Below, piece after piece: positions 270-52,149 of a stretch of DNA of 64,000 bases. Made by a program: the position numbers and the translations under genes. Position 1 is the first letter of the stretch. The number at the start of each line of letters is the position of its first letter. The notes under the pieces were generated by a model that saw nothing but the letters and a program-made list of their open reading frames with translations, made no database searches and was not told the origin of the DNA. The stretch lies in the sequence record KU726251.1; one strand, 5' to 3'.

Positions 270-1582
270 TGTCGTTTGGTCGGTTACAACAGATGGCGAA
301 CGGTCACATCGCTAATGCTCGGGGGTTACCGGCTATCGACTACGGGATATTCCTCACGGTACACGGTGCCCCAGTGACGGTGTTGAAGATGCTGTCTATC
401 ATTCACACCGGTCACTTTACGCGTGATATCTGTTTATTGACACATCTCACCTTGGCTATACCCTACAGCCACATGCGAATGATCACGTCGTCCGCAGAAG
501 GGGATTTGAAGGTAAAGCTGTTATTGCGTCGTGGACAGAAAATCGCGGGGGTCTTTAACTACCGCGGCATCGTGATAAATAACCGCGACCACAACGCGGA
601 AACACCGACGATGTTCTTGAGTCAGTCTGATGAGAAATCTATCGCTTTGGTAACATTGGAGCTGATGGATGAGTCGATGTGGTTCCTGCGTAATCGTCAA
701 GTGGGCGGCATCTACCACGAAACAGATGGGTTAACAGTGGCACGCTCGATACTGGCGGATACGTTGCCGGAAGGGGTGGCTGCAGAGGGGCAGTTGAAAG
801 GGATTGAATACGATGAAGAAGAACAGCAGGCATATCGGGACATCGTTATACCAGACTCCGAAGACTTCTTAAGCGTGTTTGATTATCTGCAGAACCATTA
901 CGGTGTTTACAGCAAAGGTATTGGGGTCTTCCAATACCTACAACGATGGTATCTGTATCGACCTTGGGACTCGTTGAAGTTTAATAACACAACGAAGCCT
1001 AAACTGGTCATCTATAATCTGCCTCGTGAACAGGCTGCTCACATTGACCGCACCACTGATATCGCGGGTAATGTTATCTATCTGATTTGTGGCGGCGACA
1101 CCAGTAGTTTGGAATACCGTGACCAGGCCGCGCTTAACCACGGTACGGGTTACCGGGTAGGGTCTGTACGTGTGTTGGATGGGCGTAGTAGTTCATTTAC
1201 GCCTGGCGACATCAGTATGACCACACCTGATAAGTTTGTGGCGCAGGCCGACCCTGCTGCGTATCCAGGCGGCGTGGTTAACGCACCAATCGATCCTGAT
1301 AAACACTTTAGTGATACCGATAAACCGCAGCGGTCTAAACTGGAGATGGGTCTGGGTACGATTGTGCAAACAACCTGGAACCGTTCAACGCACGGCATCC
1401 TATATCCTGGTATGCCAGTAAAATACGTTTTTGCCAACGAGTATGGGGTCTATACCCGCTACGGCACGTTGGTGGGTGAAGTGTTCCAGTCTGCTGTCGA
1501 CGGTCAAACGATGGCATCAGGACGTTATAACACCCAATCACAACTGAGTCTTTGGCTCAAAGATGAAAAATTTACAGCTTAG
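269..1582 (+). CDS. Putative baseplate hub-like virion protein (437 aa)
   Basis: Long coupled ORF; segments FDYLQNHYGVYSKGIG and ILYPGMPVKY resemble conserved phiKZ-group tail/baseplate proteins (recollection). Confidence 0.5.
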   Translation: MSFGRLQQMANGHIANARGLPAIDYGIFLTVHGAPVTVLKMLSIIHTGHFTRDICLLTHLTLAIPYSHMRMITSSAEGDLKVKLLLRRGQKIAGVFNYRGIVINNRDHNAETPTMFLSQSDEKSIALVTLELMDESMWFLRNRQVGGIYHETDGLTVARSILADTLPEGVAAEGQLKGIEYDEEEQQAYRDIVIPDSEDFLSVFDYLQNHYGVYSKGIGVFQYLQRWYLYRPWDSLKFNNTTKPKLVIYNLPREQAAHIDRTTDIAGNVIYLICGGDTSSLEYRDQAALNHGTGYRVGSVRVLDGRSSSFTPGDISMTTPDKFVAQADPAAYPGGVVNAPIDPDKHFSDTDKPQRSKLEMGLGTIVQTTWNRSTHGILYPGMPVKYVFANEYGVYTRYGTLVGEVFQSAVDGQTMASGRYNTQSQLSLWLKDEKFTA

Positions 1583-1594
1583 TCATCTAGTATG
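1571..1594 (+). promoter_or_regulatory. Bipartite phage promoter motif TTTAC-N15-TATG
   Basis: AAAATTTAC 1567-1575, 15-nt spacer, TATG 1591-1594, directly upstream of ORF 1626. Confidence 0.6.
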
Positions 1595-1625
1595 ACCCGT
1601 AAGTAACCTTAAGGAAAATATTGCA

Positions 1626-2423
1626 ATGAAAGCGATTCACACCTTTCGCATGACCGGCCAAACTGTTCTCGACATTGATGCGTACGAAGCCGCTAACTTC
1701 ACCAAACCGACCAAGCTCTGGGATCGCCTGGTTAAGGTACTACCGCAGAGCGGTGAGGTGCAGTTGGATTTTGTCATGGCATCGACGTTGGATAAGACAG
1801 TGGCAGTTATTTATACTGCTGACGGTGTGCAGAGTAAGAAGGACCTGGCAATCGAAGATAAAGGCGGGCTGGGTTATCACTTGTTCCTGCACTGCGTAAC
1901 CACTGCACCGATTTCAGCTGCGCTGGCGGGTCAGTACGGTTTCGCGAATGCGTATTTCCTGGCACAGAAACTCGCCGTGAATGTTATTCCGGGTGACGTG
2001 ACCACTTACCCTGAATACGTACAGCGTATCCTGCCAGAACACTTCGCTGCAGACGACTACGATTTCAATGTGTTCCGTTTCGCACTGATCGGCGAATCGC
2101 GCGATCCGGAGTACACCGTTGGCCTGCGTGCCTGTCTGCGTCACTCCGTTATCTCTTCGGATGAAGGGATGTCGAATAACGTGAACGAAGTGTTCCCGAT
2201 GATGCAAGTCGGTCCGTATATCACTTTCAACTCGTACATTCCGTTCCCGGCACAGATTCTGCCGCCGCAGAACGATAACAGTGTACTGCCAATCGCCGAC
2301 AAGTATTCACTGCGTGCGAGCGAAGCAGTTGAAGTGATTAACGATCGTCGCTTTACATTGTCAGTGACCAGCGGCATCAGTGAACCGGAAGTTGCGGTCT
2401 CACAGAGCCTGGATTTGATGTAA
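1626..2423 (+). CDS. Putative virion structural protein (265 aa)
   Basis: RBS AAGGA, host-like codon usage, followed by a terminator; lies in a structural block. Confidence 0.55.
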   Translation: MKAIHTFRMTGQTVLDIDAYEAANFTKPTKLWDRLVKVLPQSGEVQLDFVMASTLDKTVAVIYTADGVQSKKDLAIEDKGGLGYHLFLHCVTTAPISAALAGQYGFANAYFLAQKLAVNVIPGDVTTYPEYVQRILPEHFAADDYDFNVFRFALIGESRDPEYTVGLRACLRHSVISSDEGMSNNVNEVFPMMQVGPYITFNSYIPFPAQILPPQNDNSVLPIADKYSLRASEAVEVINDRRFTLSVTSGISEPEVAVSQSLDLM

Positions 2424-2430
2424 ATGTGTG

Positions 2431-2465
2431 CCTGGTCTCCTTGTGAGACCAGGTCTCTTTATTTT
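2431..2465 (+). terminator. Intrinsic terminator
   Basis: CCTGGTCTC-cttgt-GAGACCAGG plus T-rich tail. Confidence 0.8.
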
Positions 2466-2516
2466 AGCCCTCTAAACGCACTCACAACCTTCTAAAGCCA
2501 CTCTAACGGTAGAACG

Positions 2517-2570
2517 ACCCTCTATAGTGATAAAAGCTCTCAAAACGCGTTTGAGAGCGTTATAGAGGGT
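2517..2570. repeat. Long interrupted inverted repeat
   Basis: ACCCTCTATAG...GCTCTCAAA-acgcg-TTTGAGAGC...TTATAGAGGGT. Confidence 0.8.
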
Positions 2571-2589
2571 GTACTCTGAATAAAAATAA

Positions 2590-2662
2590 TTTCAGATATA
2601 TATTACCTAGGTGATAGAAGACAATCTATCAACTCAATCGACTATTAATCTAAAGGAGTATT
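2590..2662 (+). promoter_or_regulatory. Early promoter E1 with leader hairpin and conserved RBS leader
   Basis: TTTCAGATATATATTAC (contains the phiKZ early-promoter core TATATTAC), stem TGATAGA/TCTATCA, then AATCGACTATTAATCTAAAGGAGT. Confidence 0.8.
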
Positions 2663-2665
2663 GCC

Positions 2666-2809
2666 ATGTTAACTCGTAACCATAAACGTGCCATCTTTGC
2701 CATCGTTGCTGTTGTTGCTTTCGCGGTACTGTCTATCACTGTAACTCAAGATTACAATAAGTGTATCGATAACGGTAACTCTGTTGCCATGTGTACAGGT
2801 CGCGGCTAA
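2666..2809 (+). CDS. Small single-pass membrane protein (47 aa; not in ORF track)
   Basis: Strong RBS AAAGGAG; MLTRNHKRAIFAIVAVVAFAVLSITVTQDYNKCIDNGNSVAMCTGRG; the stop overlaps the next ATG. Confidence 0.8.
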   Translation: MLTRNHKRAIFAIVAVVAFAVLSITVTQDYNKCIDNGNSVAMCTGRG

Positions 2810-2991
2810 TGGACTTTTCTGATGCGCAGTTTGCCGAGTTCTTATCTCACCCGCGTGTTAAACGTGAGTGGGATAATCTCACTAACAGTGTTCGTCGTCA
2901 GGACGAAGAAGAAATCGTTCACGTTACCGCACAAGTCTTACTCGTCTCACCGACAGGTAATGTGTTTCCAATGCAGCAGGAGATTTACTAA
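2809..2991 (+). CDS. Hypothetical protein (60 aa)
   Basis: TAATG coupling at both ends. Confidence 0.7.
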   Translation: MDFSDAQFAEFLSHPRVKREWDNLTNSVRRQDEEEIVHVTAQVLLVSPTGNVFPMQQEIY

Positions 2992-3179
2992 TGGGTGTTT
3001 TAGTTAATTACGATGGTAAAAACGGAATCGTGCTTCGTGAAGTGGAAGATAACGAAACAGTAGAGGTGAATCCGCAAACCTCAGAACGCACATTTATCGT
3101 GGGGCCGAAAAGCGCACTACCGAAGCCGGACTGGAAAGAAGAGCTGGCGAAGTTCCGTGGGGAACTCGAGAAGAAGTAG
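2991..3179 (+). CDS. Hypothetical protein (62 aa)
   Basis: TAATG coupling; followed by a terminator. Confidence 0.7.
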   Translation: MGVLVNYDGKNGIVLREVEDNETVEVNPQTSERTFIVGPKSALPKPDWKEELAKFRGELEKK

Positions 3180-3190
3180 TATAGATAATT

Positions 3191-3220
3191 TAATACCACC
3201 TACGGGTGGTATTATTTTTT
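3191..3220 (+). terminator. Intrinsic terminator
   Basis: TAATACCACC-tacg-GGTGGTATTA plus T tract. Confidence 0.8.
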
Positions 3221-3231
3221 GCCTAAGGAAC

Positions 3232-3654
3232 ATGAAAATGATTAATGAGAAGCTCCAAAAGTATTTAAAGAATGACACCGACTGGATGGTTCTTGACCAG
3301 TACGGACGATTTGTTCCGCTATCCAAGGATTCCCCTATACCCCGTGACAAGGCGATTTATATTCCTGACGGTAAGGGCGGTTATCGTTTCTGGGAAGGCC
3401 AGGAAGTAAAAGAGGAAATGTTCTACATGGAGCCGAAGTTCCGTGCAGCGTTCCCATCGAAAAATATCAACGGCTATGTTTACAACGCAATTCCGCCGAT
3501 TACGCATCCTAACTTTGAGGTTGTGAACTACCCCGCAACTGTTCTGGATTGGCAACGTGCCATTAGTGAACACTACACGATTCCGCTTGAAGGTGTTTAC
3601 TTCCCATTCCGTGATATTAGTTTAGATGACTTTATTAACTCTCTTAAGGACTAA
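3232..3654 (+). CDS. Hypothetical protein (140 aa)
   Basis: RBS AAGGA before ATG 3232, in frame with track ORF 3157. Confidence 0.7.
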   Translation: MKMINEKLQKYLKNDTDWMVLDQYGRFVPLSKDSPIPRDKAIYIPDGKGGYRFWEGQEVKEEMFYMEPKFRAAFPSKNINGYVYNAIPPITHPNFEVVNYPATVLDWQRAISEHYTIPLEGVYFPFRDISLDDFINSLKD

Positions 3655-3658
3655 AAAA

Positions 3659-4519
3659 ATGTACAGCATTACTGATTTTATCAAAAGTTCAGATTTCCCC
3701 CTACCTCCCGACCACGAAGTATTGGCTAGCGATCCGTTAACCGATGCGGCCATTGTCCAGCTGGACCGCGACAAACGTCGTACTTACGTCGTGTTGGTCG
3801 AAGGGCAGAGCTACGGCCTGTCTTCTTACGACCTGGAGCAGCAAGAGCGTTTCCTCGATGAAAACCGCAAAACGTCAATGTATAGCGCTATCTCGCGCGC
3901 GTTGTGCAAGGTAATGGCAACCATTACAGACAGCAAAAAGCGTATCGCTGTGCTGCAGGGTATCAATGCGCTAACGACCAAAATCCAGCAACTTGAAGGT
4001 TTCCATTGCCCACGATTGGAAGCCGCACAGAAGGATGCTAAGGGCGATGAGGCCATGGCGCTGTTTGAAGGCAATACTGTCTTTGCAACAGCTGAAGCTT
4101 GTTATCTCACCTATCCAACTTTTAACTATACGCCAATCAGCGACACCGTAGACGGGATTAAAGTAGAGAACGTTGTGCAGTGGGGTCGCGCAAATCTCAA
4201 GTTTGTGATGTCCCATGAAGAAGAAAATCAAGACGGCCTTGGCCAGAAGATTCAACGTTGGTTCACGGCGCGTTTGGACGCCGACTGGGAAGCGCATGTT
4301 AACGCAGAGCTTCGTAAGTTTCACGCGGTAGTCGCATTGTTAAAAGAAGACGCTCCCGCCCCGAAACAATCGAAGGCACCAGTGGTTGGCTGGACGTGTT
4401 CCGGCTGTAACCGCAACCATGTCGCTACCGTACCGAGAACCCATCGCTACACTTCGCAGACAATGAACATTGCTTGTCCGGCTTGCGGTAAGATCAACGA
4501 AGTTGATTATAAACCGTAG
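3659..4519 (+). CDS. Hypothetical protein with C-terminal Zn ribbon (286 aa)
   Basis: RBS TAAGGA; CSGC...CPACG at the C-terminus. Confidence 0.7.
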   Translation: MYSITDFIKSSDFPLPPDHEVLASDPLTDAAIVQLDRDKRRTYVVLVEGQSYGLSSYDLEQQERFLDENRKTSMYSAISRALCKVMATITDSKKRIAVLQGINALTTKIQQLEGFHCPRLEAAQKDAKGDEAMALFEGNTVFATAEACYLTYPTFNYTPISDTVDGIKVENVVQWGRANLKFVMSHEEENQDGLGQKIQRWFTARLDADWEAHVNAELRKFHAVVALLKEDAPAPKQSKAPVVGWTCSGCNRNHVATVPRTHRYTSQTMNIACPACGKINEVDYKP

Positions 4520-4525
4520 TAGTAC

Positions 4526-4564
4526 CCCTCTTACCTTCGGGTAAGAGGGATTTGTATTTATTTT
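4526..4564 (+). terminator. Intrinsic terminator (28 bp identical to 31679-31706)
   Basis: CCCTCTTACC-ttcg-GGTAAGAGGG plus T-rich tail. Confidence 0.85.
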
Positions 4565-4567
4565 CCG

Positions 4568-4606
4568 AAAAGAAAATAAAAGGCGCTCTCTCCCGAAGGA
4601 GAGAGC
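4568..4606 (-). terminator. Minus-strand intrinsic terminator
   Basis: GCTCTCTCC-cgaa-GGAGAGAGC (UUCG loop on minus) preceded by an A tract. Confidence 0.7.
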
Positions 4607-4632
4607 TTATTCACATCCACTTAGAGGTTAAC

Positions 4633-4779
4633 ATGAATACCTTTATGCAACAACTGCGTCAGCAACAGCTGAAACAAGTCGCTTTTCAACAACGTCTGCA
4701 AGAGGTTACCCGCCAACCGCAGACTTCCACCCGTACCATTAAAGGACTAGGAGGTGAGATAATACTCAACAAGAGATAA
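4633..4779 (+). CDS. Gln-rich microprotein (48 aa)
   Basis: RBS GAGG; MNTFMQQLRQQQLKQVAFQQRLQEVTRQPQ...; host-optimised codons. Confidence 0.6.
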   Translation: MNTFMQQLRQQQLKQVAFQQRLQEVTRQPQTSTRTIKGLGGEIILNKR

Positions 4780-4922
4780 CAGGAATATTTGCCTGGAATA
4801 ATTATACCCGAGTGCTAGAACACTCGGGTAATTCCACGCATATAAATAGTTCGTCGTATTTTTTTTGATCTCGGCAGGACGCATAAACTGCCCGTAGGGG
4901 AGCCTAAGCTCCCCAGTGTTCG

Positions 4923-6485
4923 TTAGAACAAATCATCACCCATTCCACCGGTGAAGAAGTTGATAGACGACGCTGTTACGGTTTCTTCTTTATCACAATC
5001 CCAAGGCAGGATGCCTACATCCTGGAAAGGTATCACTGTGTAGTGATAAGATTCTTTAGTATCGATAATGGTGCGGTGTTTACCGCGTTGAACTTCTAAG
5101 AAGCTATGGCCGTTGACCACACGCTTGTTAAAATACATTTCACCATCGGCCTCGTTATCAAGGCTCGAACAACTATCGTAAAGACCACGACCAGGTAAGT
5201 TCTTACAGAAGCCTACCGGGTCTAACGCTTTTAAGCGCTTACCTTCTGGGGAAATCTGGTGTGGGGCAATTAAGAACCCACGGTTGCGTACCACTTGAAT
5301 GTTACGAGCAATACGATAAATTTCTTTGATATCACTCCCGGCAATACCGTTGCCGTGTCCTGCTTTGCTGATTGTGCCTAAGTAGTCTGCGCGAATGCCA
5401 ACAACATGATAACCGCGACGACGTAAGTCGAGAATAAGGTCGTTGATGTAGTGCACTTTAAAATCGGAGTTGGTGTGCTTTTGGAAAACGTAGTCCCAAC
5501 CGTTTGCGCGAATCTTACCACAGAGGTAATCAGACATTGCTGTTGTGTGTGCTAACTTCTCTTCAGCGGTCGCATCTTGTGAAATGGTCATCTGTGGAAC
5601 TTGTCCTTCAAAATGACCGTACAGAGCTTGATAGCCGTAAGCTAAGTTAACGTCGAGTTCGTTTTCTAAACTCAAGTCAAGAATAATTGGTTGCAGTGTG
5701 CCCTTCACATCCGCCATTACTTTCTCAGGCGTGTTGAAGATAGGAATCGATAGGCTCAGCAAGAGACTGAACAAAGACTTACAGTTAAAAGGTAACGCTG
5801 GCATTAGCCACAGTTCTTCGGTAATCCCTTTGTTACAACCGAGCATTTGGTTAATGGCTTTCCAGCCCGTCTGCAAACCATTACCTGCAGCTTTCTTGTT
5901 AATCGAGTCGAACACTTTAACAAACGGAGCACGATTATCTGTAACCAGCTCACCGACCAATGATGGAATCTTATTATGAGAGCGTTCACCGAACGTAGAT
6001 AACGCCTCTTTGAGTTCGAGCACTGCGGTGTTCAGATCAACACGTGTCTCAGTTCCATTCAATGCTCCGAACGCGCGACCCATTTTTGTTTTGAGTTCGA
6101 CGCTCTGTAAACATTGACGTAATTGGAAATAATATTGAGACAGTTGTCGATTAAGATGCTCGGTACGTTTGTCTTCTTCCTCGGGCAAATCGTCTTCGAG
6201 GAATTTGGTAATCGTATCGTATAGAGGACGTACTTGAGTGGTGGCCAGCTTCAAGCGCTTCATAACGCTCGCGTGGTCGTATTCCATGCCGCCGTCTATG
6301 ATAGATGTGATAATGTCCTTGATCTCGATGAGTGCAAAGCGCTCTTCGCCATCTTCCGCATATTCCGGAAGCTTGATCTGCATCAGAACTTTTCTTATGA
6401 CATCATGATCCTTGCTAGGGTCCGTCAGCATAGATTCTGTATACAGTGCGGCTAAGGCGGTTATCAACATCATTTTACTATTCAT
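4923..6485 (-). CDS. dnaB: SF4 (DnaB-like) replicative helicase, phiKZ gp118-type
   Basis: TGWKAINQM (H1 region), degenerate Walker A PALPFNCKS, SLENE, Walker B IRADYL, PHQIS, QRGKHR; divergent upstream of the capsid gene as in the phiKZ group. Confidence 0.85.
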   Translation of the reverse strand: MNSKMMLITALAALYTESMLTDPSKDHDVIRKVLMQIKLPEYAEDGEERFALIEIKDIITSIIDGGMEYDHASVMKRLKLATTQVRPLYDTITKFLEDDLPEEEDKRTEHLNRQLSQYYFQLRQCLQSVELKTKMGRAFGALNGTETRVDLNTAVLELKEALSTFGERSHNKIPSLVGELVTDNRAPFVKVFDSINKKAAGNGLQTGWKAINQMLGCNKGITEELWLMPALPFNCKSLFSLLLSLSIPIFNTPEKVMADVKGTLQPIILDLSLENELDVNLAYGYQALYGHFEGQVPQMTISQDATAEEKLAHTTAMSDYLCGKIRANGWDYVFQKHTNSDFKVHYINDLILDLRRRGYHVVGIRADYLGTISKAGHGNGIAGSDIKEIYRIARNIQVVRNRGFLIAPHQISPEGKRLKALDPVGFCKNLPGRGLYDSCSSLDNEADGEMYFNKRVVNGHSFLEVQRGKHRTIIDTKESYHYTVIPFQDVGILPWDCDKEETVTASSINFFTGGMGDDLF

Positions 6486-6499
6486 GGAGCATCCTTAAA

Positions 6500-7024
6500 A
6501 TGCAAATTCGTTTTAGTCCACCGTGGGAAGTTCAATCTAACATAGATAAAGGGGCTGGCGTTAAAAAGTTGGAGGAACTCCAAGCAAGCTTCTTTAACTG
6601 GTTATATGACTGCTCGTCGGGCTTTAGTTCCATCATACTGCCAGTGAGTGACCCTATTTCGATTTATAAATCGATTATGGCACCACCTGCACTTCCGACT
6701 CTTTATTATGACCAGGTCTTAAACCTGGTTGAGAAAGGTACGAATGAAACCCTTGCTGATTTATATGGGGAATCATTCGACGGTCGTTTACGTTGGGTGT
6801 TCTCACAACGTGGCGATGTTGTTGTGGCGTCTTTTGCAGAAGCTAAATCCGGACCGGGTTTTTCTTTAAGTGAAGACCACGCTGCGAAAAAGATGTTCTG
6901 CGCAGAACTTTTTAAATATATGCGTCCCAAGACTCGTGTCGTGGATGATACGTTCAGTACGTCGACGCAGTTTGCTGCGCACGAAGTGCTGACGCAGTTG
7001 TACGCATGTCATTTATCTAAATAA
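6500..7024 (+). CDS. Conserved hypothetical protein upstream of major capsid (174 aa)
   Basis: ATG 6500 in frame with track ORF 6446; syntenic position. Confidence 0.65.
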   Translation: MQIRFSPPWEVQSNIDKGAGVKKLEELQASFFNWLYDCSSGFSSIILPVSDPISIYKSIMAPPALPTLYYDQVLNLVEKGTNETLADLYGESFDGRLRWVFSQRGDVVVASFAEAKSGPGFSLSEDHAAKKMFCAELFKYMRPKTRVVDDTFSTSTQFAAHEVLTQLYACHLSK

Positions 7025-7036
7025 GGTAAACTTGAA

Positions 7037-9337: not shown

Positions 9338-9367
9338 TAATCCGTAAGGATTACGTTGCCTAAGATT

Positions 9368-9407
9368 AGCTTACTCCCTTCGGGGAGTAAGCTTTTTCTT
9401 TTTTTCT
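9368..9407 (+). terminator. Intrinsic terminator
   Basis: AGCTTACTCCC-ttcg-GGGAGTAAGCT plus T tract. Confidence 0.9.
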
Positions 9408-9412
9408 AAAAA

Positions 9413-9438: not shown

Positions 9439-9472
9439 GAGAGTCGTTCGGTTTTAACTTAAGGAGACAGTA

Positions 9473-10176: not shown

Positions 10177-10200
10177 TTTACGTTACGGGCACTGGGTATG
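10177..10200 (+). promoter_or_regulatory. Bipartite motif TTTAC-N15-TATG
   Basis: TTTAC 10177-81, TATG 10197-200. Confidence 0.6.
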
Positions 10201-23088: not shown

Positions 23089-23130
23089 AGCCCTCTTCTC
23101 CTCCGGGGGAAGAGGCTTCTTATTTTTTTA
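23089..23130 (+). terminator. Intrinsic terminator
   Basis: GC-rich hairpin plus T tract. Confidence 0.75.
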
Positions 23131-23153
23131 TTACGTCTACGTAAATTACTGTG
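23130..23153 (+). promoter_or_regulatory. Bipartite motif ATTAC-N15-TGTG
   Basis: Immediately after the terminator, upstream of ORF 23182. Confidence 0.55.
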
Positions 23154-23181: not shown

Positions 23182-23820
23182 ATGCAATTACAATTTCGTC
23201 AACGGTCTGTACTACTACCGTTTAGCGCTATATTAGGTTCGTTTACCAAAATGCTGTCTGTGGATTTTACTGCAGCTGAGAAAGAAGCGCTGTTATTGGC
23301 GGCAGTCGAAGAAGTATTGTGGGAGGCATTTTACGTAGTGCCGTTTCGTAGCTGCTTAAACGCCCCGTATGTTGAAGGGCAGTTTGTCAGCGCGCTTTCC
23401 GCCGCGATTACCAAACGTAAACTAAATGCCATGGCGCATGTCAAAGAGATCACCGCGCAACGAGGACGGATATTCGCTGCCGTCAGAAATGTGTTAATTA
23501 AAGAAGGGTTTCTTGCAGACTCGTTAGGTCCCGAAGTTCCTTGGGAACCAGGTCATCCACCGCGTCAGTTCGACCACGGGTACAAGTTAAGTATAATTAT
23601 GCCACGCGGTAAGCGTGACGTCTCATTGGGGAAATGGTTACAGATAAGCTGGGTTCGTCCTACTATCGATTGGCAAGAAATGTCGGTCAATCGCTATCTG
23701 GAACACCTGGCAAAAACACCGGCACAGTTTCACCGTTCAACAATCCTGCCGCTACACATGCTGTTAAAACCGTCCCTGTCATTGGCAGAAGCCATATACC
23801 TGCTTAGTGGAGAGAAGTGA
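23182..23820 (+). CDS. Hypothetical protein (212 aa)
   Basis: RBS AAGGA; coupled to the next gene. Confidence 0.75.
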   Translation: MQLQFRQRSVLLPFSAILGSFTKMLSVDFTAAEKEALLLAAVEEVLWEAFYVVPFRSCLNAPYVEGQFVSALSAAITKRKLNAMAHVKEITAQRGRIFAAVRNVLIKEGFLADSLGPEVPWEPGHPPRQFDHGYKLSIIMPRGKRDVSLGKWLQISWVRPTIDWQEMSVNRYLEHLAKTPAQFHRSTILPLHMLLKPSLSLAEAIYLLSGEK

Positions 23821-25190: not shown

Positions 25191-25230
25191 ACAGCGTATA
25201 GGGCTTCGGCCCCTATACTGTTTATTATTT
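25191..25230 (+). terminator. Intrinsic terminator
   Basis: GTATAGGGC-ttcg-GCCCCTATAC plus T tail. Confidence 0.75.
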
Positions 25231-25900: not shown

Positions 25901-25941
25901 CTACCCTCGCCCGTTTAGCGAGGGTAGGTATTTATTTTTTT
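25901..25941 (+). terminator. Intrinsic terminator
   Basis: CTACCCTCGC/GCGAGGGTAG plus T tract. Confidence 0.8.
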
Positions 25942-25977
25942 CTTACGAATCGTCCACTCCGTATAGGAGGTAAGTCC

Positions 25978-30066: not shown

Positions 30067-30088
30067 CGGATAGATATTATTTTAGGGA
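30064..30088 (+). promoter_or_regulatory. Early-type promoter E4
   Basis: TTTCGGATAGATATTAT-ttta-GGGA. Confidence 0.65.
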
Positions 30089-30180
30089 GACGTACAAAAT
30101 TTACGTTTCATCCTTAGCATATGCTAGAAGCCGTTGTGAGTCGGTTAAAACTCACCAACTTAAACTAAGAGAGAAATACC

Positions 30181-30952: not shown

Positions 30953-30990
30953 CAGGCATCCTTCGGGGTGCCTGTTTTATTTTTTTTTCT
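30953..30990 (+). terminator. Intrinsic terminator
   Basis: CAGGCATCC-ttcg-GGGTGCCTG plus T tract. Confidence 0.85.
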
Positions 30991-31013
30991 TTACGTTTGG
31001 TCGCTATATTGTG
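30990..31013 (+). promoter_or_regulatory. Bipartite motif TTTAC-N15-TGTG
   Basis: Upstream of the dTMP kinase gene. Confidence 0.55.
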
Positions 31014-31682: not shown

Positions 31683-31720
31683 CCCTCTTACCTTCGGGTA
31701 AGAGGGTATTGTCTTTTTTA
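31683..31720 (+). terminator. Intrinsic terminator (duplicate of 4526)
   Basis: CCCTCTTACC-ttcg-GGTAAGAGGG. Confidence 0.85.
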
Positions 31721-31740
31721 CAGATCAGAACAGTCCTATG
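31717..31740 (+). promoter_or_regulatory. Bipartite motif TTTAC-N15-TATG
   Basis: TTTAC 31717-21, TATG 31737-40. Confidence 0.6.
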
Positions 31741-33287: not shown

Positions 33288-33318
33288 ATTAAGGGGTCTT
33301 CGGACCCCTTAATTTTTT
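33288..33318 (+). terminator. Intrinsic terminator
   Basis: ATTAAGGGGTC-ttcg-GACCCCTTAAT plus T tract. Confidence 0.85.
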
Positions 33319-33323: not shown

Positions 33324-33347
33324 TTTACGCATTATCCTCATGTTGTG
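33324..33347 (+). promoter_or_regulatory. Bipartite motif TTTAC-N15-TGTG heading the GNAT-dam operon
   Basis: TTTAC 33324-28, TGTG 33344-47. Confidence 0.55.
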
Positions 33348-33374: not shown

Positions 33375-34372
33375 ATGAAAACTGTGGCTAAATTGTTTCG
33401 CACCAGCATCCGCACTGCCGAGTTCCGAAATAACGTCGGTACCGATACTGTACGAGCACGCCGCCTAAAAGAGTTTCTAAAGGACGAGACTTATTCTGTT
33501 TACGTGGTGAAGAATAAAGAAACCTGGGAGGGTTATTTAGTGGCCACCTATCGACACGGTGACCCTACACTAACCTGTCACTATTTTGAGGAGTTTGTAC
33601 CTGGGGCGTTCGATAAAGTTGGTTTGGCCCTTGTGCTCGACCATACCGGATTCGAATATATGTCGTGTCCAGCACCTACTGACGATGTTGAACAAAAACT
33701 GGTCGAAAAAGGGTTTGTTCTTTCAGATATCGTTTGGGCATGTCATTCTAAACTGTTTGACAAAGTAATCACCGCATCGGAAATCAAGATTATTTCTGGT
33801 GATGCATACGCAGAACTTACCAAGGAAGATAAAGACGTTATCCTGAATTTGATTAGCGGTGCAATTTGCGAAGAGCTAGAATACGATGTGCGTGGCTATT
33901 ATACGCACATTGGTCCGTTAGCAGAAACAGTAATAGCAAGAATTCAGCACGCTAATGTGGAGACTGCAATTTGGCGAGACGGTCATGATATCGTCGGTAT
34001 TGCCAGATGCGCTTGGTTACACCAGGCGTCGTTGAACTTTCTGGTTTAACCGTTGCACCCACGCACCGTAAACGTGGCATTGGTCGCCGGCTAATGGGCG
34101 CGCTATTCGATTTCGCACAACGTCATTCCGACCAAGTCTATATTGAAACAGCTGCTGATAATAATCCAGCAAATCACCTGTATGGCAACATCTTACGTTG
34201 CAAGCAGGTACTGCGTACACTAACGTTGAAACGCGATCCTGAACTTATTAGCTGGAAACGGGTGAATGGAAACCGCGCCGATCGTGTGCTGAAAGAAGAA
34301 CCTAGCTTTCCGGTGGAGACTACAACCAGGCTGACTATTAGTGATATGTTTCAATCTGGCATGAGAGGGTGA
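33375..34372 (+). CDS. Tandem (double) GNAT acetyltransferase (about 332 aa), one apparent missing base at about 34011
   Basis: Degenerate N-domain ending LVEKGF; C-domain GIARC-(A)LVTPGVVELSGLTVAPTHRKRGIGRRL...NNPANHLY after the frame repair. Confidence 0.8.
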
Positions 34373-37623: not shown

Positions 37624-37629
37624 GGCCCG

Positions 37630-37666
37630 CCTCCTTGCCCACGGGTGAGGAGGTCCCTTTTTATTT
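37630..37666 (+). terminator. Intrinsic terminator
   Basis: CCTCCTTGCCC/GGTGAGGAGG imperfect stem plus T-rich tail. Confidence 0.65.
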
Positions 37667-37687
37667 ACATCAGTCCACTAACTTATG
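37664..37687 (+). promoter_or_regulatory. Bipartite motif TTTAC-N15-TATG
   Basis: TTTAC 37664-68, TATG 37684-87. Confidence 0.6.
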
Positions 37688-38763: not shown

Positions 38764-39216
38764 ATGTTTCAATGTTCAGTCGTCAATGATGCGGAATTGG
38801 CCGTGTACAAGCAGCGCACAATCCGGGCGCTGGATGCTGAAAAACCAGTCGATGTTAAAACGCGTGCAATCATTAGGGCATTTAGCGAATGGCCGAATAT
38901 CGCAACCGTTTGGGCATTCACGGGAGAAGTTCGCAAAGACGGAGACAAGCTTCGTACACGTAGACACCACAGCTTAACATTTGTGGCAACCGAGGCGGGT
39001 CTTAAAGACATTAATCATTTATTAGAAGGATGGCAGCCGCACGAATACGGGAAACGTTTTCAGTTAAACTTTACTTGGCTGCGTCAAGAAGGCAACGCGA
39101 ATCTCTGTTATCCAAGCTGGACGTTTAGACTCAACTATCGACCTGACCCAGATGTGATGGAAAGAGTGATGGAGCACTGGCTCGCACTCGCAATTTTTAC
39201 AGAACATAACCATTAA
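38764..39216 (+). CDS. Hypothetical protein (150 aa), paralogue of the next gene
   Basis: WPNIATVWAFTG aligns with YPGATTMWSCHG. Confidence 0.7.
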   Translation: MFQCSVVNDAELAVYKQRTIRALDAEKPVDVKTRAIIRAFSEWPNIATVWAFTGEVRKDGDKLRTRRHHSLTFVATEAGLKDINHLLEGWQPHEYGKRFQLNFTWLRQEGNANLCYPSWTFRLNYRPDPDVMERVMEHWLALAIFTEHNH

Positions 39217-39244
39217 ATGAAGACACCCTTAAGGAGAATTAAAG

Positions 39245-42991: not shown

Positions 42992-43007
42992 GTTTCTGGA
43001 GGCGTTA

Positions 43008-43541
43008 ATGGCAGACCGCTATCAGCCCGACCTAACACTCTCGTCGAAAGCGCTTGTCGTGGCGTTGATTAATCACGATAACGGCTTGTCATTATCGCCT
43101 GACGAGATTGTGATAAGCGGAGTAGGGCCAATCGACTTAGGTGTTGAAAGTGCCCGTACCTCGCAAGCGTACATTGCGAAAGCACGTAAACCTAACGGCA
43201 AGAAGGTTACCGTCTATTACGACCGTCTAGTCGCTAATAAGATTATCGACCCGCAAGGACCGATACTGGTTACTGTAGCTCCCGGCGACACCTATGCTGA
43301 TTTAGCGACAGTTGTAAACCAGTTATGCGGTTTAAACTTGTCACGTGAAGACATCTCGACAGGGGTTATTACACCAACAAACGAGCCGTTGATTGCAGCG
43401 ATGAGTGACGATTCACCGGCTTGGACGGCTACCTTTACATTCACGGCGTTTAATGAAAAAGAAGCTGTGGCAAGTCTGGATGAAGAAACTGTTTTATGCA
43501 TCGGTGATGATGCAGTGTTAACCTACGGAGACGATGCATAA
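43008..43541 (+). CDS. Tail/baseplate paralogue family A adaptor (177 aa)
   Basis: SSKALVVALINHDN...VTVYYDRL...CGLNLSREDI. Confidence 0.7.
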   Translation: MADRYQPDLTLSSKALVVALINHDNGLSLSPDEIVISGVGPIDLGVESARTSQAYIAKARKPNGKKVTVYYDRLVANKIIDPQGPILVTVAPGDTYADLATVVNQLCGLNLSREDISTGVITPTNEPLIAAMSDDSPAWTATFTFTAFNEKEAVASLDEETVLCIGDDAVLTYGDDA

Positions 43542-44011
43542 TGGCAACTGTAGTCAAAAAGAAACGTTTGCATGAACTCGATTCTTACGACGGTGATAAG
43601 TCGAGCGCAGTAGCGCTTATTAGCGTTGATGAAAAGGAGTACAAACTTCCTCTCAGTGAAATCGGCGGCGGGGCAGATGCAAACCCTATCCAAAACTTAT
43701 CCGGTGCTGACGGTATCGTTGAAATAGATCCCAATATTGCGGACGACTTCATTATCCGTTTAGGTGACCCCACCACTGCGCTTTCTATCACACCTATTAC
43801 CGACCCGGTTCCGGGTACGCGATATGAATTATTACTGACGCTACGTCAGGGTACCGGTGCAAACAAAATCACCTGGCCGGCTTCGGTTAAATGGCCTAAC
43901 GGTGCAGAACCTCCGTTATCGTACACGCTAGACGCCGAGGATGTGTTGTCGTTGTCATCTACGGATGGCGGTACAACCTGGAAAGGGGCCATTTGCGGAA
44001 CAGGATACTAA
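43541..44011 (+). CDS. Small tail-fibre-associated protein (156 aa)
   Basis: LTLRQGTGANKITWPASVKWPNG...STDGGTTW, a common phage tail C-terminal domain. Confidence 0.7.
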   Translation: MATVVKKKRLHELDSYDGDKSSAVALISVDEKEYKLPLSEIGGGADANPIQNLSGADGIVEIDPNIADDFIIRLGDPTTALSITPITDPVPGTRYELLLTLRQGTGANKITWPASVKWPNGAEPPLSYTLDAEDVLSLSSTDGGTTWKGAICGTGY

Positions 44012-44014
44012 GCC

Positions 44015-47000: not shown

Positions 47001-47031
47001 TATCCCAGACGATCCGCTCGAAACTAATTAA
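44015..47031 (+). CDS. GH8-like glycoside hydrolase / tail-associated enzyme (about 1005 aa), one apparent missing A at about 44129
   Basis: TTEGQSLL and NAADAEVWFIDACYLLWRITGEPRY match BcsZ-type SEGQ and SASDGDVW...WKEQRY motifs; jelly-roll-like insert; the N-terminal 38 codons rejoin after adding one A. Confidence 0.6.
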
Positions 47032-47036
47032 GTGTA

Positions 47037-47079
47037 TACCAGCTATCCTTCGGGGTGGCTGGTACGCTTTATTTTATTT
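47037..47079 (+). terminator. Intrinsic terminator
   Basis: TACCAGCTATCC-ttcg-GGGTGGCTGGTA plus T-rich tail. Confidence 0.8.
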
Positions 47080-47101
47080 CAGATAGATGTTATCTCAGTG
47101 A
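47077..47101 (+). promoter_or_regulatory. Early-type promoter E7
   Basis: TTTCAGATAGATGTTAT-ctca-GTGA. Confidence 0.7.
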
Positions 47102-47158
47102 ACCTCTGAAATTTACGTTTCAATCAGAGCTTATGTCATGTATTAAGGAGCAATTAAA

Positions 47159-47491
47159 ATGTCCAAAGTCTATCACATTGCGGTATTGCGTCAGGCAACT
47201 GACCTTGAAGGCGACGGTGAACTTCGAATGCAGGAAGCCATTCTGAGCACCGTTAAAGAACTTAACCAAGCAAACAATTTCGATGCACGCTTCGAGGCGC
47301 TGCCTGTAAGCCGTAACGCTTTCTACGGCAGTCAAATCCTGGCAACCCAGTTTGCGATGGCTTTAAGTGACTTGCGCAATAATCCTAGTCCTGAAACCGC
47401 GACGAAGATGAACAAACTGTCGTTATGGATGAATAACCTGGATGCCCCCGCAACATCCATTGTAAATGGTTTGGGGGTGGTTAATGGGTAG
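47159..47491 (+). CDS. Hypothetical early protein (110 aa)
   Basis: RBS TAAGGAG. Confidence 0.75.
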   Translation: MSKVYHIAVLRQATDLEGDGELRMQEAILSTVKELNQANNFDARFEALPVSRNAFYGSQILATQFAMALSDLRNNPSPETATKMNKLSLWMNNLDAPATSIVNGLGVVNG

Positions 47492-47819
47492 AGTAATCCG
47501 TGTTGCCAGACCAATGCGTCTCAATAGGACGCCGATGATAAATCGCGATATCAGTGAAGCTGTAAAACTGTTGTCGAATATCGACGGTTACACCTTTAAA
47601 GTGATAACACTGTACGACTACCCAGAAGGCAAAGTTCCGCAAGAGGCGCTGGATAAATTCGTTAATGTATTAGACGATTGCCTTAAGAGCCCAACGGACG
47701 TAAATCTTATCAAACTAAACACCATGTCCCATGAGCTGTACCGCCTGCGTAAAATGGGCATTCACGCTCGCATCGGTAAAGGTGACCAAACGTTGGCCGA
47801 ATACTGGGCTAAACAATAA
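47484..47819 (+). CDS. Hypothetical protein (111 aa)
   Basis: Overlap-coupled to the previous gene. Confidence 0.7.
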   Translation: MGRVIRVARPMRLNRTPMINRDISEAVKLLSNIDGYTFKVITLYDYPEGKVPQEALDKFVNVLDDCLKSPTDVNLIKLNTMSHELYRLRKMGIHARIGKGDQTLAEYWAKQ

Positions 47820-47846
47820 GCTATTTTAAATCCTAAGGAGCATTAA

Positions 47847-48365
47847 GTGAATATTACCATGAACCTGTACACCAAACGGGAACGTAACGTTTTAGAATCT
47901 GGCGTTGCCCCAGAAGTATTGGCTGCGGGGGATATTAGTATCGACCCACTGAAAGTGAAAGTCGCGGAACTGTTCCCTCGTGATGAATGGGACATCTGGT
48001 ATTTCCGTTGTTCGTCGGTATTGAATGCAATCAAACAACTGTCTGATTATCAGCCTGGCCCGTACATCGGTACCTGGCACTGGTACGTCCCTCGCACCCC
48101 GAACTTCCTCTACTTACACGATGACGATAAACGTACTCATATTCGCACTGTAGCGACGCCTGAGCGTTTGGAGCGTTATCTGGGGTTAATCCACGACCGT
48201 CCTCGTAACGAGCTGCAAAGCATCGTAGAAGTGCTCAGACAGGTACCTTTAGATGGTATCCTGGAACTGGACATGAAAATTGCTGATCGGCCTCGCCACT
48301 ACTGGGAATTTTCCTGGGTAGATGCGAAATACGAAAACCATAACGTTATCTATCTGAAGCGTTAA
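47847..48365 (+). CDS. Trp-rich hypothetical protein (172 aa)
   Basis: RBS TAAGGAG. Confidence 0.75.
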   Translation: MNITMNLYTKRERNVLESGVAPEVLAAGDISIDPLKVKVAELFPRDEWDIWYFRCSSVLNAIKQLSDYQPGPYIGTWHWYVPRTPNFLYLHDDDKRTHIRTVATPERLERYLGLIHDRPRNELQSIVEVLRQVPLDGILELDMKIADRPRHYWEFSWVDAKYENHNVIYLKR

Positions 48366-48375
48366 GGGGGACAGG

Positions 48376-48696
48376 ATGTTGAACTGGTTACTTGCGCTGA
48401 TTAACAAGCGACAAAAACAACTGTACGAAGAAAACCGAGAATTGGCTGCCGCTAACCGTCGTGTACAGGCCGATAACTTGCAGTTAAGACACGACCTCGC
48501 GAAACTGGGTGTTAACGCGAGTAGGCTTTGTACGCACATTAGCCGGTGCCACGATATCATCGAACGTATTGGACACTACCATCTTACGTCTCCTGCGCGT
48601 CGCGTCTATGACGCGGCCGTCCAGGGATTGAAAGATACCAGGAATGTGTACGACGAGATGTTAGAAGAGTTTAGCAAACGTGAGGATAAATACTAA
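48376..48696 (+). CDS. Coiled-coil hypothetical protein (106 aa)
   Basis: RBS AAGGGG. Confidence 0.7.
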   Translation: MLNWLLALINKRQKQLYEENRELAAANRRVQADNLQLRHDLAKLGVNASRLCTHISRCHDIIERIGHYHLTSPARRVYDAAVQGLKDTRNVYDEMLEEFSKREDKY

Positions 48697-49078
48697 TGGA
48701 AATGCCAACGAACACCGACTTAGCACTGGCAATCGAACACATGAAAAACCATCAGCTGACGTTACTGAATGCAAGCACAGAAGGGCAACGTCAAGGGTAT
48801 GCGCTCGTTGCAAAAGCAGCGTTAGAACTTAACAAGATTCTACTCGCTAAACTTTACGGGCTGGAAAACAGCGTGCTCCATGCGTCGCACCTGGCGAAGC
48901 CAGCGAGTTAGTTACGAATGTGCGGCTGTATGCAAGTCGTGAAATGGAACGTTTAACCAACGAATGGAATGTCCAGTGTAACGGCGAGCGTGCTGATAAA
49001 GATCCGCGTAAAGTCGCACTGACGCCGGGCGTGTACATCAAAGACGGCACCATTGACGAATACAGCGGATTTAACTGA
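48696..49078 (+). CDS. Hypothetical protein, either 71 aa or about 127 aa if a -1 shift near 48860-48905 is repaired
   Basis: The -1 frame is open 48851-49078 with protein-like sequence and no RBS of its own. Confidence 0.5.
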
Positions 49079-49101
49079 TCGGCGGATAAGGGTGATTGTG
49101 A

Positions 49102-49527
49102 ATGGTAACCATAGACGTAGCTATCTCTATCGAGCTTCAACGCATCGGTGTAGGTACACTAAAACTTCGTTATCGTGATTTACCGCATTACAACAAGATG
49201 TTTGATGTTGGGGTGATAAAGTTTTATAACCGGTACGGGCCAAGAGAACTATGTCTATGGTTTGTCGAGTTAGCGATAACTTATGGCGAGTTTTATCATC
49301 CTAATGTACCGCATGTCGAACATGTGTCAAGAGGGCACCTGGAAACTTCCAGAGAGTTCTATCAGCGATTGTATGGCGCGATGGAGGAGTCCGCACCCAT
49401 CGACTACGACGTACCACCTGAACTGTTATTAATCGACCATGAAGGAGAAGCCGGTGTCTATTTCATTACAGGGACTGACTATTCACGAGATTCAGAAATA
49501 TTTACTCGAGGGCGGGAAACTGACTGA
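49102..49527 (+). CDS. Hypothetical protein (141 aa)
   Basis: In-operon ORF. Confidence 0.6.
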   Translation: MVTIDVAISIELQRIGVGTLKLRYRDLPHYNKMFDVGVIKFYNRYGPRELCLWFVELAITYGEFYHPNVPHVEHVSRGHLETSREFYQRLYGAMEESAPIDYDVPPELLLIDHEGEAGVYFITGTDYSRDSEIFTRGRETD

Positions 49528-49759
49528 CGACTATCAAACCGCAGATATGTTGCTACAGTCATTTGTACCGTTACGTGCTGAGTATTACGAAATCGCGTTC
49601 CTGGGCGATGAATATTGTGTCCGCACGCAAGGGCGCGAATACGAAGCAGTTCGCGTACCGCGCACACTCGGCGGGGTGATGATACTTATCGCTAATATCG
49701 AAGCACTCAATGCGAAATGTGCGTTATACATCGCACAGGGAGGTCGCAATGGATTTTAA
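49439..49759 (+). CDS. Hypothetical protein (106 aa)
   Basis: Protein-like; overlaps the previous ORF by 89 bp, so the start is uncertain. Confidence 0.6.
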   Translation: MKEKPVSISLQGLTIHEIQKYLLEGGKLTDDYQTADMLLQSFVPLRAEYYEIAFLGDEYCVRTQGREYEAVRVPRTLGGVMILIANIEALNAKCALYIAQGGRNGF

Positions 49760-49824
49760 GTGGGAACCATTATCGTTAGCAGAAGTTCGTAACAGAATCG
49801 ATAGAGCTATTGCAAGGAGAAAAC

Positions 49825-50226
49825 ATGTTCGGCCTGTTTCAGGAGAAAAAACAATTGCGTCGCCAATTAGAAATACTGGAATTGGAACTCAGCCTCTCAA
49901 AGACTGAGTTGGAAATTTCGAAAGAAGCGTGGAAGAGAAATCTCGATGAATCTTTCGAAGAACGCCGTAAGCTTACACGATTACTTTCTGAGGAACAGTC
50001 TAAGAACCGGAAACTCGAAGACGAGCTACGAGATGCCCGACGAGATGCGGATCTGCGTGATAAGATGTTGGGATGGAACCTGGGTGCCCTAATCTATTTC
50101 ATAGAGCAGCGTTGGGAACCAAAGACACTCCTTGAGTTACTCTATGAAAAACTCTCCTGCGTAGGTAAACGTTCTGCGGCCATCGAGTATTTTCGTAGTC
50201 ACGGTTTCGAGGTAAAAGATGAGTAA
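49825..50226 (+). CDS. Coiled-coil hypothetical protein (133 aa)
   Basis: Strong RBS AAGGAG before ATG 49825. Confidence 0.7.
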   Translation: MFGLFQEKKQLRRQLEILELELSLSKTELEISKEAWKRNLDESFEERRKLTRLLSEEQSKNRKLEDELRDARRDADLRDKMLGWNLGALIYFIEQRWEPKTLLELLYEKLSCVGKRSAAIEYFRSHGFEVKDE

Positions 50227-50269
50227 AAATAACAGTTTGTTTTCCCTTTAACCATGGAAACCACAAGCA

Positions 50270-50602
50270 ATGAAAACGAAACGAACGTCAGTCGTGTTCC
50301 AGCAGGGACGTGCGCGACTCTATAAAGGTAAGAAACTCATTGGTACATTCGAGTATCAAGAGAACCAGCTAATCGTCGATGTTATCATTCTCGGTTTAGC
50401 AGCGAAGTGGTCACCTTTAAAAAGGACATTAGCCAAACGTGCGATGGAGAAGCTCCGCCGCGACCAGATAAAAGCATTTAACAAACCTTTTCCACTTGAG
50501 GCGTACCGAGTACAGCCTCGTTGCGCACACATCACGACGTCACCCATGATTGCTAAGCTCGATGTGACCGATCTGAGAGAAATGTTAACTGTACGGCCGT
50601 AG
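50270..50602 (+). CDS. Basic hypothetical protein (110 aa)
   Basis: In-operon ORF. Confidence 0.65.
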   Translation: MKTKRTSVVFQQGRARLYKGKKLIGTFEYQENQLIVDVIILGLAAKWSPLKRTLAKRAMEKLRRDQIKAFNKPFPLEAYRVQPRCAHITTSPMIAKLDVTDLREMLTVRP

Positions 50603-50629
50603 TGTCATAGCCCCTTAAGGAGTATTTAA

Positions 50630-51070
50630 ATGTTAAAGCCACGCAAACAGAAAAGATTACAGTTTGTCAAAATAGTACATCCGGAGTCCCGTCGTGTTAC
50701 AGGTGGACGTCTCTACGTGGGTAAACACCGTAGTCGTCTTATCAGCTGGTCGGCAATGGCCAACGTAGCCACCCAACTCCAGGCAATGGTTGAAGACCGT
50801 TGTCAGTTAAAAGGGGACTTCTTTCAAGAGAAGAAACCCTACCGTGATATCTTCCGTACACTGAAAGCGTGCTGGGTACTCAGTTGGGTGCCTGGCCGCG
50901 AACAACTTTATTTTCTGCGTAAGTTCCCACGCCCTATGCCGAAAGAAAACATTAGCGTTTTCTTAGACAAACTAAAACGTTTTAATGGCATCGGCATTAA
51001 CGCTAATAAAGAGCAAGTTTCTGCTACAGTAGCAGCCCGGAAACTCTTACGCGATTACGTGGCCGATTGA
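50630..51070 (+). CDS. Basic hypothetical protein (146 aa)
   Basis: RBS TAAGGAG. Confidence 0.7.
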   Translation: MLKPRKQKRLQFVKIVHPESRRVTGGRLYVGKHRSRLISWSAMANVATQLQAMVEDRCQLKGDFFQEKKPYRDIFRTLKACWVLSWVPGREQLYFLRKFPRPMPKENISVFLDKLKRFNGIGINANKEQVSATVAARKLLRDYVAD

Positions 51071-51110
51071 CTTGAGAGGCACTTATCCCAAAAGCGGTCA
51101 ATAAAGCAGC

Positions 51111-51148
51111 ACCCTACTCCTTCGGGAGTAGGGTTTCTTCTTTTTTTG
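51111..51148 (+). terminator. Intrinsic terminator
   Basis: ACCCTACTCC-ttcg-GGAGTAGGGT plus T tract. Confidence 0.85.
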
Positions 51149-51168
51149 TCTAGTCCGATTACAATTAT

Positions 51169-51242
51169 TTTCAGATATATATTACTTAGGTGAGAGTTAA
51201 CCATTAACTCTTATCTAATCGACCATTATCTTAAGGAGTTTT
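51169..51242 (+). promoter_or_regulatory. Early promoter E8 with leader hairpin and conserved leader
   Basis: TTTCAGATATATATTAC; stem AGAGTTAA/TTAACTCT; AATCGACCATTATCTTAAGGAGT. Confidence 0.8.
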
Positions 51243-51245
51243 AAC

Positions 51246-51692
51246 ATGTACATTCTGAATAACGAACTTACTAAGTACGCTAGCAAAAACCCGATTATGA
51301 TTTCTTTCCTAATCGTGATGGCGGCCAACAAACAAGACCCTAGCGAATTCACTACTGAGGACTTCGAAGAGATTATCGCCAACGCCAAAGAAGCCACGTT
51401 CCAGACCACAGAACCTACTCGCGACGAGTTCCCTCTAGGTGAAGCCGGCGATGTAATGTTTAACGACATGATTGCTTCGTACTACATCAATAAACGTGGT
51501 ATGGAAATCGAATACGACGAACTTCCTACTAGCAGCTTTGCTGAAATGATTCGTGATTATCGTCGTCAAGTTGTCTCTGACGATGTCGTAAAGAAATACA
51601 TGGCACAAATCAGCCCATTCAGTCTTGAATTCGAAAACCGCGCGGTTGCCTTAGCAACACATCGCCTGCGTTTAGAAAAAGAAGTACACTAA
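51246..51692 (+). CDS. Acidic early hypothetical protein (148 aa)
   Basis: First gene after E8; host-like codons. Confidence 0.8.
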   Translation: MYILNNELTKYASKNPIMISFLIVMAANKQDPSEFTTEDFEEIIANAKEATFQTTEPTRDEFPLGEAGDVMFNDMIASYYINKRGMEIEYDELPTSSFAEMIRDYRRQVVSDDVVKKYMAQISPFSLEFENRAVALATHRLRLEKEVH

Positions 51693-51753
51693 TAATAACC
51701 CGGCGGGCAAAGTCCCGCCAATTCACCTACAATCTACAAAAAAGGAATATCCC

Positions 51754-51972
51754 ATGCGCAACCTGTTCTCCAAATCTGAAATCAAACCTGTTGTTGAAAC
51801 CGCAGCCAAACGTAAGCCAGACATGATTGACCTGCTGCTGAAAATGTCTGCAGCAGAAGCCAAAGCTTTCATGAAGACAATGAAAGACGGCGAGAAAACG
51901 ATTGATAATGTTGAAGTAACCTACGGTGTTAAAGACCGCCCAAAGAATAACGACCTTGTGTGGGTCTGTTAA
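51754..51972 (+). CDS. Hypothetical protein (72 aa)
   Basis: RBS AAGGA; host-like codons; preceded by hairpin GGCGGG/CCCGCC. Confidence 0.75.
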   Translation: MRNLFSKSEIKPVVETAAKRKPDMIDLLLKMSAAEAKAFMKTMKDGEKTIDNVEVTYGVKDRPKNNDLVWVC

Positions 51973-52000
51973 TCGGCGATTGAGGATAAAGTCGTGAAGA

Positions 52001-52030
52001 AAAGGGAGCTTCGGCTCCCCTTCTTTTTTT
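52001..52030 (+). terminator. Intrinsic terminator
   Basis: GGGAGC-ttcg-GCTCCC plus T tract. Confidence 0.85.
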
Positions 52031-52149
52031 GTTTCCTTTTCTTTTTGTTTGCTCTTGTTCGGATTCTGGTACGCTCTACGCTTTTAATATGCTGGCAGGA
52101 GGTCTAAAAATCTTACGACCTCAATAATCCCTTAACTCGAGTTAACGCG

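Follow-up and report, generated by a model that had tools for sequence, protein, structure and literature searches.

In bacteriophage phiKZ, middle promoters have been described by a motif AAanTTACc centred near position -24, and late promoters by a TATG element with the transcription start at its G (PMC4666361, PMC8244752). In 28 middle promoters mapped by differential RNA sequencing, the TAC box lies about 22 nt upstream of the start (PMC8244752). For one promoter, P78M, a middle motif was reported together with a TATG placed as at late promoters, the G being the start (PMC4666361). A two-part design is also known from the late promoters of phage AR9 (AACA-N6-T-A/G), which are used by a non-virion RNA polymerase, have a fixed spacing and start at their last base (PMC5312081, PMC7598289). 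Here we analyze an element of the form TTAC-N15-T(A/G)TG in a stretch of 64,000 nt (the window), identical in sequence to bases 62001-126000 of Enterobacteria phage SEGD1 (KU726251.1, Seoulvirus SPN3US), a 239-kb relative of phiKZ with its own RNA polymerases. Nothing resembling human sequence was encountered, and translation involved no alternative genetic code. Coordinates refer to the window unless stated otherwise, and signed positions are counted from the final G of the element, the predicted start, as +1.

Across the entire window the element was found 14 times, compared to 4.7 times in dinucleotide shuffles, and none of 100 shuffles reached 14. Five of the 14 matches lie inside genes and resemble background. 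The intergenic DNA of the window, 6801 bases, contains nine matches on the plus strand, which is the gene strand, and none on the minus strand, and other spacings from 8 to 23 gave 0-1 matches per strand. A first-order Markov null for this intergenic DNA gave 0.30 matches on average and never more than 4 in 2000 trials, in agreement with a preliminary description of this DNA which had estimated well under one chance match between genes. Genome-wide tests were performed on the entire SEGD1 record with its 267 annotated genes. Its intergenic DNA holds 24 matches with the 15-base spacer, the other spacings between 6 and 27 having 0-3 each, and its coding DNA showed a flat profile, with 15 matches at N15 and 4-18 at other spacings. 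When all pairs of 4-mers at spacings of 4-25 were scanned in the intergenic DNA of SEGD1 without bias, TACG-N14-TATG and TTAC-N15-TATG ranked first, these top dyads being observed 16-17 times with 0.7-0.9 expected (p about 1e-16). At the 164 intergenic TTAC-purine sites, only TATG (16) and TGTG (8) were enriched at the fixed offset, and at neighbouring offsets any tetramer occurred at most twice. It is therefore confirmed that the two boxes and the exact 15-base gap between them are real and far beyond chance.

Positions on which the 24 intergenic copies had not been selected were also constrained. A T occupies -23 in 20 copies, position -18, directly after TTAC, is a purine in all 24 (G in 20, A in 4), and positions -26 to -24 are A/T-rich, the upstream tract being more often T-rich than A-rich. 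The spacer and the bases downstream carry no information. The second box reads TATG in 16 copies and TGTG in 8. Every intergenic copy with an assignable downstream gene points toward that gene, the final G lying 24-40 nt before the start codon in 10 of 17 distances. The two-box signal amounts to about 19 bits, a value inflated by selection on the pattern and about enough to specify its sites in a 240-kb genome. Strong terminator hairpins stand directly before about 10 of the 24 copies, five of them in the window; adjacency to a terminator was rejected as part of the motif, because the same share of random intergenic positions (0.38) shows strong folds. Sites resembling sigma-70 promoters were not enriched between 22000 and 40000 (16 versus 22.6 expected), and none coincides with a motif site. 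An assignment to bacterial sigma-70 was also rejected, since with this box geometry the spacer would measure 14 bases and the -10 adenine is absent from TGTG.

Conservation of the element was studied in phages SPAsTU (Seoulvirus), Asesino (Erskinevirus), Wellington (Wellingtonvirus) and EarlPhillipIV (Derbicusvirus), with phiKZ, Erwinia phage RAY and Klebsiella phage Eowyn as distant comparison genomes. Whole-genome counts at N15 were 35 for SEGD1, 32 for SPAsTU, 22 for Asesino, 18 for Wellington and 14 for EarlPhillipIV, with 0-11 at other spacings, and the motif also exceeded a reversed-pattern control. For the protein downstream of each SEGD1 copy, homologues were then located in the four other genomes and the 190 bases upstream were searched. 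The exact motif at N15 was present in 34 of 52 orthologous upstream regions (16/18, 10/17, 4/10 and 4/7 per genome); on the reverse strand none of the 52 contained it, and other spacings yielded 0-2. Identity of the spacer to that of SEGD1 was 0.51, 0.39 and 0.37 in the three distant genera, and identity of the boxes was 0.83-1.00, which is partly inflated since the best match per region was picked. All 34 exact orthologues have the same purine at -2 as SEGD1 (A in 24, G in 10). As this purine is kept while the spacers are close to saturation, TATG and TGTG do not appear to be interchangeable, which argues that A or G at -2 defines two distinct subtypes. The central claim of the preliminary description, a rigid two-box element with 15 bases between the boxes, was thus borne out by its intergenic and gene-directed placement, by the spacing peak and by its retention across genera of relatives; the spaced-dyad scan against background that had been proposed there as a check likewise put the N15 pair on top in the intergenic DNA of SEGD1.

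The spacing peak was absent in phiKZ, RAY and Eowyn, although motif discovery from scratch was not run for them and a diverged form may exist; strict coupling of the two boxes therefore appears to be characteristic of the SPN3US-like clade. Of the 34 AAnnTTAC sites outside open reading frames of phiKZ, only 2 have TATG at N15. One such arrangement is P78M, which we located at position 74112 of the phiKZ genome, on the minus strand before PHIKZ078, with the form AAAATTACc-N14-TATG, that is, TTAC-N15-TATG. By this geometry, the start in SEGD1 is predicted at the final G, which puts TTAC at -22 to -19. Also, the phiKZ homologue of an SMC-like gene carries a TTAC box in the same geometry as the SEGD1 gene, this being the sole usable pair. 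To say that the motifs are separate in phiKZ and fused in SEGD1, as the preliminary description did, is fair, given that the phiKZ genome has no spacing peak and that its motifs were published as separate. No earlier description of the coupled motif was found in the searchable literature, including that on SPN3US and Erwinia jumbo-phage promoter motifs.

Like phiKZ middle promoters, the SEGD1 copies have an A/T-rich tract (A or T at -26 to -23) followed by TTAC about 20 bases before the predicted start, and P78M shares their geometry; in contrast to phiKZ, the SPN3US clade has an obligatory start-site box, and the base after TTAC is a purine instead of C or T. With phiKZ late promoters the TATG copies share the four-base start element, which in phiKZ is read by the non-virion polymerase with its promoter-recognition subunit gp68, and SEGD1 possesses a single homologue of gp68, namely gp032. 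However, upstream of TATG the late promoters of phiKZ show no sequence conservation (PMC4666361), whereas in SEGD1 a TTAC-purine box is fixed 15 bases upstream of the start element, which is TGTG in a third of the copies. The AR9 late promoters differ in their boxes, in a much shorter spacer and in their recognition, for which template-strand uracil is needed. We consider it probable that the SEGD1 copies are two-box promoters of the middle class, in which a phiKZ-type TTAC box is combined with the TATG start element of the non-virion polymerase.

The seven exact sites listed in the preliminary description all exist, but the coordinates given there were one base low, falling on the conserved T at -23, and two exact intergenic sites, at 30101 and 47113, had been missed. 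All seven count as intergenic and lie before genes; the TTAC of the first site overlaps the last codons of gp065. This TATG site (1572..1594) has its final G 32 nt before the start codon of gp066; exact orthologues were found in SPAsTU, Asesino and EarlPhillipIV, and a TAAC variant in Wellington. A second TATG site, at 10178..10200 before gp077 and gp078, is exact in all four other genomes with differing spacers, and gp078 matches an Asesino gene annotated as "polymerase". At 23131..23153, a TGTG site lies 15 nt past a terminator hairpin (23092-23115) and before gp091 and the acetyltransferase gene gp092; TGTG is retained in SPAsTU, Asesino and Wellington. To judge by the ribosome-binding site and by where the promoter lies, gp091 probably begins at 23182 and not at 23251 as annotated. 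The first of the missed sites (TATG, 30101..30123) precedes gp102 and has an exact copy in Asesino before the gene in the same position. Thymidylate kinase gene gp103 is preceded by a TGTG site (30991..31013) after a terminator (30953-30974), exact in SPAsTU and with one-mismatch variants in Asesino, Wellington and EarlPhillipIV. The gene for the helix-turn-helix regulator gp104 is preceded by a TATG site (31718..31740) after a terminator (31683-31706), exact in SPAsTU. Another TGTG site (33325..33347), located after a terminator (33288-33313), precedes gp107 and a Dam-methylase unit, and TGTG is retained in SPAsTU and Asesino; gp107 and gp108 (33380-34372) are without annotation in the SEGD1 record. 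The remaining sites are of the TATG form, at 37665..37687 before gp114 and after a terminator (37629-37654), exact in SPAsTU, Asesino and Wellington, and at 47113..47135 before gp129, exact in SPAsTU and Asesino. All nine are on the plus strand.

Several candidate variants, none of them significant alone, also stand before genes. On the plus strand these are TTAC-N15-TATA before gp096 (25943..25965, after a terminator at 25901-25927), TTAC-N15-AATG before gp118 (39197..39219, inside the end of gp117) and GTAC-N15-TATG before gp141 (52069..52091), and on the minus strand TAAC-N15-TATG before the helicase gene gp072 (6541..6563). A further match with one mismatch, TTAT-N15-TATG at 25225, is not established individually. 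These near matches are present where the preliminary description had placed them, but as a group one-mismatch matches are only weakly enriched (15 versus about 9 expected), and none of them is established by itself. In Wellington, TTAC-N15-TATA equals the TATG form in frequency (10 copies versus 2.6 expected), and the TAAC form was found in orthologous promoters of Wellington and EarlPhillipIV, so that some credit may be given to the near matches.

The units downstream of the motif in SEGD1 encode thymidylate kinase, dihydrofolate reductase, thymidylate synthase, an SMC-like protein, a nuclease/RNase H, a Dam-methylase, a helix-turn-helix regulator and a polymerase-gene unit. TATG copies precede the dihydrofolate reductase, thymidylate synthase, SMC-like and DNA-polymerase units, and TGTG copies precede the thymidylate kinase, Dam-methylase and nuclease/RNase H units. 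The suggestion that TGTG is tied to metabolic genes has to be discarded, as the dihydrofolate reductase and thymidylate synthase units carry TATG. Outside the window, five motif copies occur in gene-poor DNA at the start of the SEGD1 genome (1-3300). Two of these lie about 90 nt before tRNA-like Rfam matches (2731-2800 and 2803-2874), which ARAGORN did not call; another two have terminator-like hairpins about 100 nt further downstream and are possible sources of small RNAs. Middle promoters of phage 201phi2-1 also precede tRNA-like genes (PMC11512511). Also outside the window, a copy on the minus strand at genome position 143036 stands 38 nt ahead of a reading frame without annotation, which ends after 47 codons.

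Gene-strand TATG upstream of genes was about twice as frequent genome-wide as its reverse complement (85 versus 44), and those TATG copies that have no TTAC are most frequent at 30-40 nt upstream of the start codon. There are thus hints of phiKZ-like, TATG-only late promoters in SEGD1. An upstream element was searched for at the other intergenic T(A/G)TG copies and none was found. There is a second intergenic motif, AGATA(G/T)ATATTA(T/C)CT, a long AT-rich sequence of high conservation; copies are located at 2594, 9418, 10223, 31768 and 51173, with variants near 30070 and 47085. It precedes the gene for the sigma-like gp032 and the beta/beta' polymerase genes gp037-038. Downstream of several copies there is a hairpin with compensating stem changes, and after it a shared short sequence. 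According to published work, the early promoters used by the virion polymerase of these phages consist of an extended AT-rich element that is highly conserved (PMC7598289), and since the AGATA motif fits this description, it takes the place of the early class and is probably the early virion-polymerase promoter. At 10178/10223, 31718/31768, 30070/30101 and 47085/47113, the two motifs stand in tandem ahead of a single gene, and either of them may come first. This arrangement suggests expression in more than one phase.

Other explanations of the TTAC-N15-T(A/G)TG element were weighed against the middle-promoter reading. The copies might be promoters of the non-virion polymerase without being middle promoters, representing instead the general or late form of the clade. 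TATG is indeed the late start element in phiKZ, and gp066, gp077 and gp129, which follow motif copies, have no assigned function and adjoin structural genes. However, the upstream regions inspected for capsid, terminase, sheath-side and paralogous virion genes are devoid of the motif, some of them having TATG alone, and the identifiable downstream genes belong to replication and nucleotide metabolism, which makes this explanation unlikely. The element might also constitute a second type of early promoter, read by the virion polymerase, with the start a few bases after TTAC and T(A/G)TG as a downstream element. The presumed early motif does end in TTAC or TTAT, in related phages transcription from early promoters begins about 6 nt past the consensus (PMC5312081), and five copies of the element fall within the first 3.3 kb of the genome record. 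Against this, the early class is characterized by a long, highly conserved AT-rich element near -10 (PMC7598289), whereas the spacer of TTAC-N15-T(A/G)TG is not conserved; SEGD1 has a separate AT-rich motif before its polymerase genes; and the TTAC box of phiKZ lies about 22 nt before mapped starts. We regard this second possibility as improbable.

We give still less weight to the idea that the copies are no promoters at all and serve as a binding site for a phage DNA-binding protein or as a processing signal on read-through transcripts. Several copies do stand in tandem with another promoter-like motif, but the boxes lack the symmetry of a dimeric operator, the spacer has neither conserved pairing nor conserved sequence, many copies follow directly on strong terminators, where little read-through RNA would be expected, and the geometry equals that of phiKZ P78M. 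An artefact of chance or composition might be suspected because the boxes are short and because the five window matches inside genes are ordinary ones, but the nine intergenic matches observed against 0.3 expected, their peak at a single spacing and their conservation across genera leave practically no room for it, and it is refuted by the spacing and orthology controls.

If the copies are two-box middle promoters, box one would consist of the A/T-rich tract, TTAC and the purine (about -26 to -18) and box two of T(A/G)TG (-3 to +1), with exactly 15 unconstrained bases between TTAC and T(A/G)TG. Transcription would most likely start at the final G, giving leaders of about 25-40 nt. The polymerase is most likely the non-virion RNA polymerase of the phage, of which gp032, the homologue of phiKZ gp68, would be the sigma-like subunit. 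The TTAC-purine box, 19 bp upstream of the start element from centre to centre, might be read by gp032 or, more likely, by a helper factor. Such a factor is favoured because in phiKZ the purified polymerase does not use middle promoters in vitro and the TTAC box inhibits transcription about three-fold (PMC4666361). A second DNA-contacting loop, noted in gp68 downstream of its -35-like contact (PMC7618050), could be an alternative reader of the TTAC box. The class would correspond to phiKZ middle promoters and switch on genes for replication and nucleotide metabolism. An upstream box at a fixed distance from the core and the use of a helper factor are also features of the middle promoters of phage T4, which combine a MotA box with a -10 element. 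The T4 promoters employ the host polymerase and sigma-70, and the analogy is one of function, with no homology implied.

Some observations weigh against this scheme. The inhibition by the TTAC box in phiKZ indicates that the polymerase alone may not suffice. In phiKZ, any substitution in TATG strongly lowers transcription in vitro (PMC4666361), and TGTG copies in SEGD1 would thus imply a different tolerance. SEGD1 gp032 and phiKZ gp68, as sigma-like subunits, share only 16% identity, too little for an alignment around the DNA-contact loops of the phiKZ protein to be informative. No transcriptome paper on SPN3US was found in the searchable literature, and although the pattern of downstream genes fits the middle class, the timing is a conjecture from gene functions alone.

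More tentatively, the element may define a promoter class of SPN3US-like nucleus-forming phages that can be predicted from sequence, in which the phiKZ middle box and the late start element are obligatory halves and the purine at -2 sets two functional subclasses. How a four-base TATG can provide specificity has been raised as a question (PMC7598289), and the reader of the phiKZ middle promoters is not established (PMC4666361). The SPN3US clade offers a cleaner case, with a rigid spacer and with the natural variants TATG, TGTG, TATA and TAAC sorted by evolution. The motif is directly usable for annotating transcription units in SPN3US-like genomes and allows in vitro work on promoter recognition by the non-virion polymerase. 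If our interpretation is true, it would suggest a single recognition mechanism for middle and late transcription of the family, with a new reader of the TTAC box.

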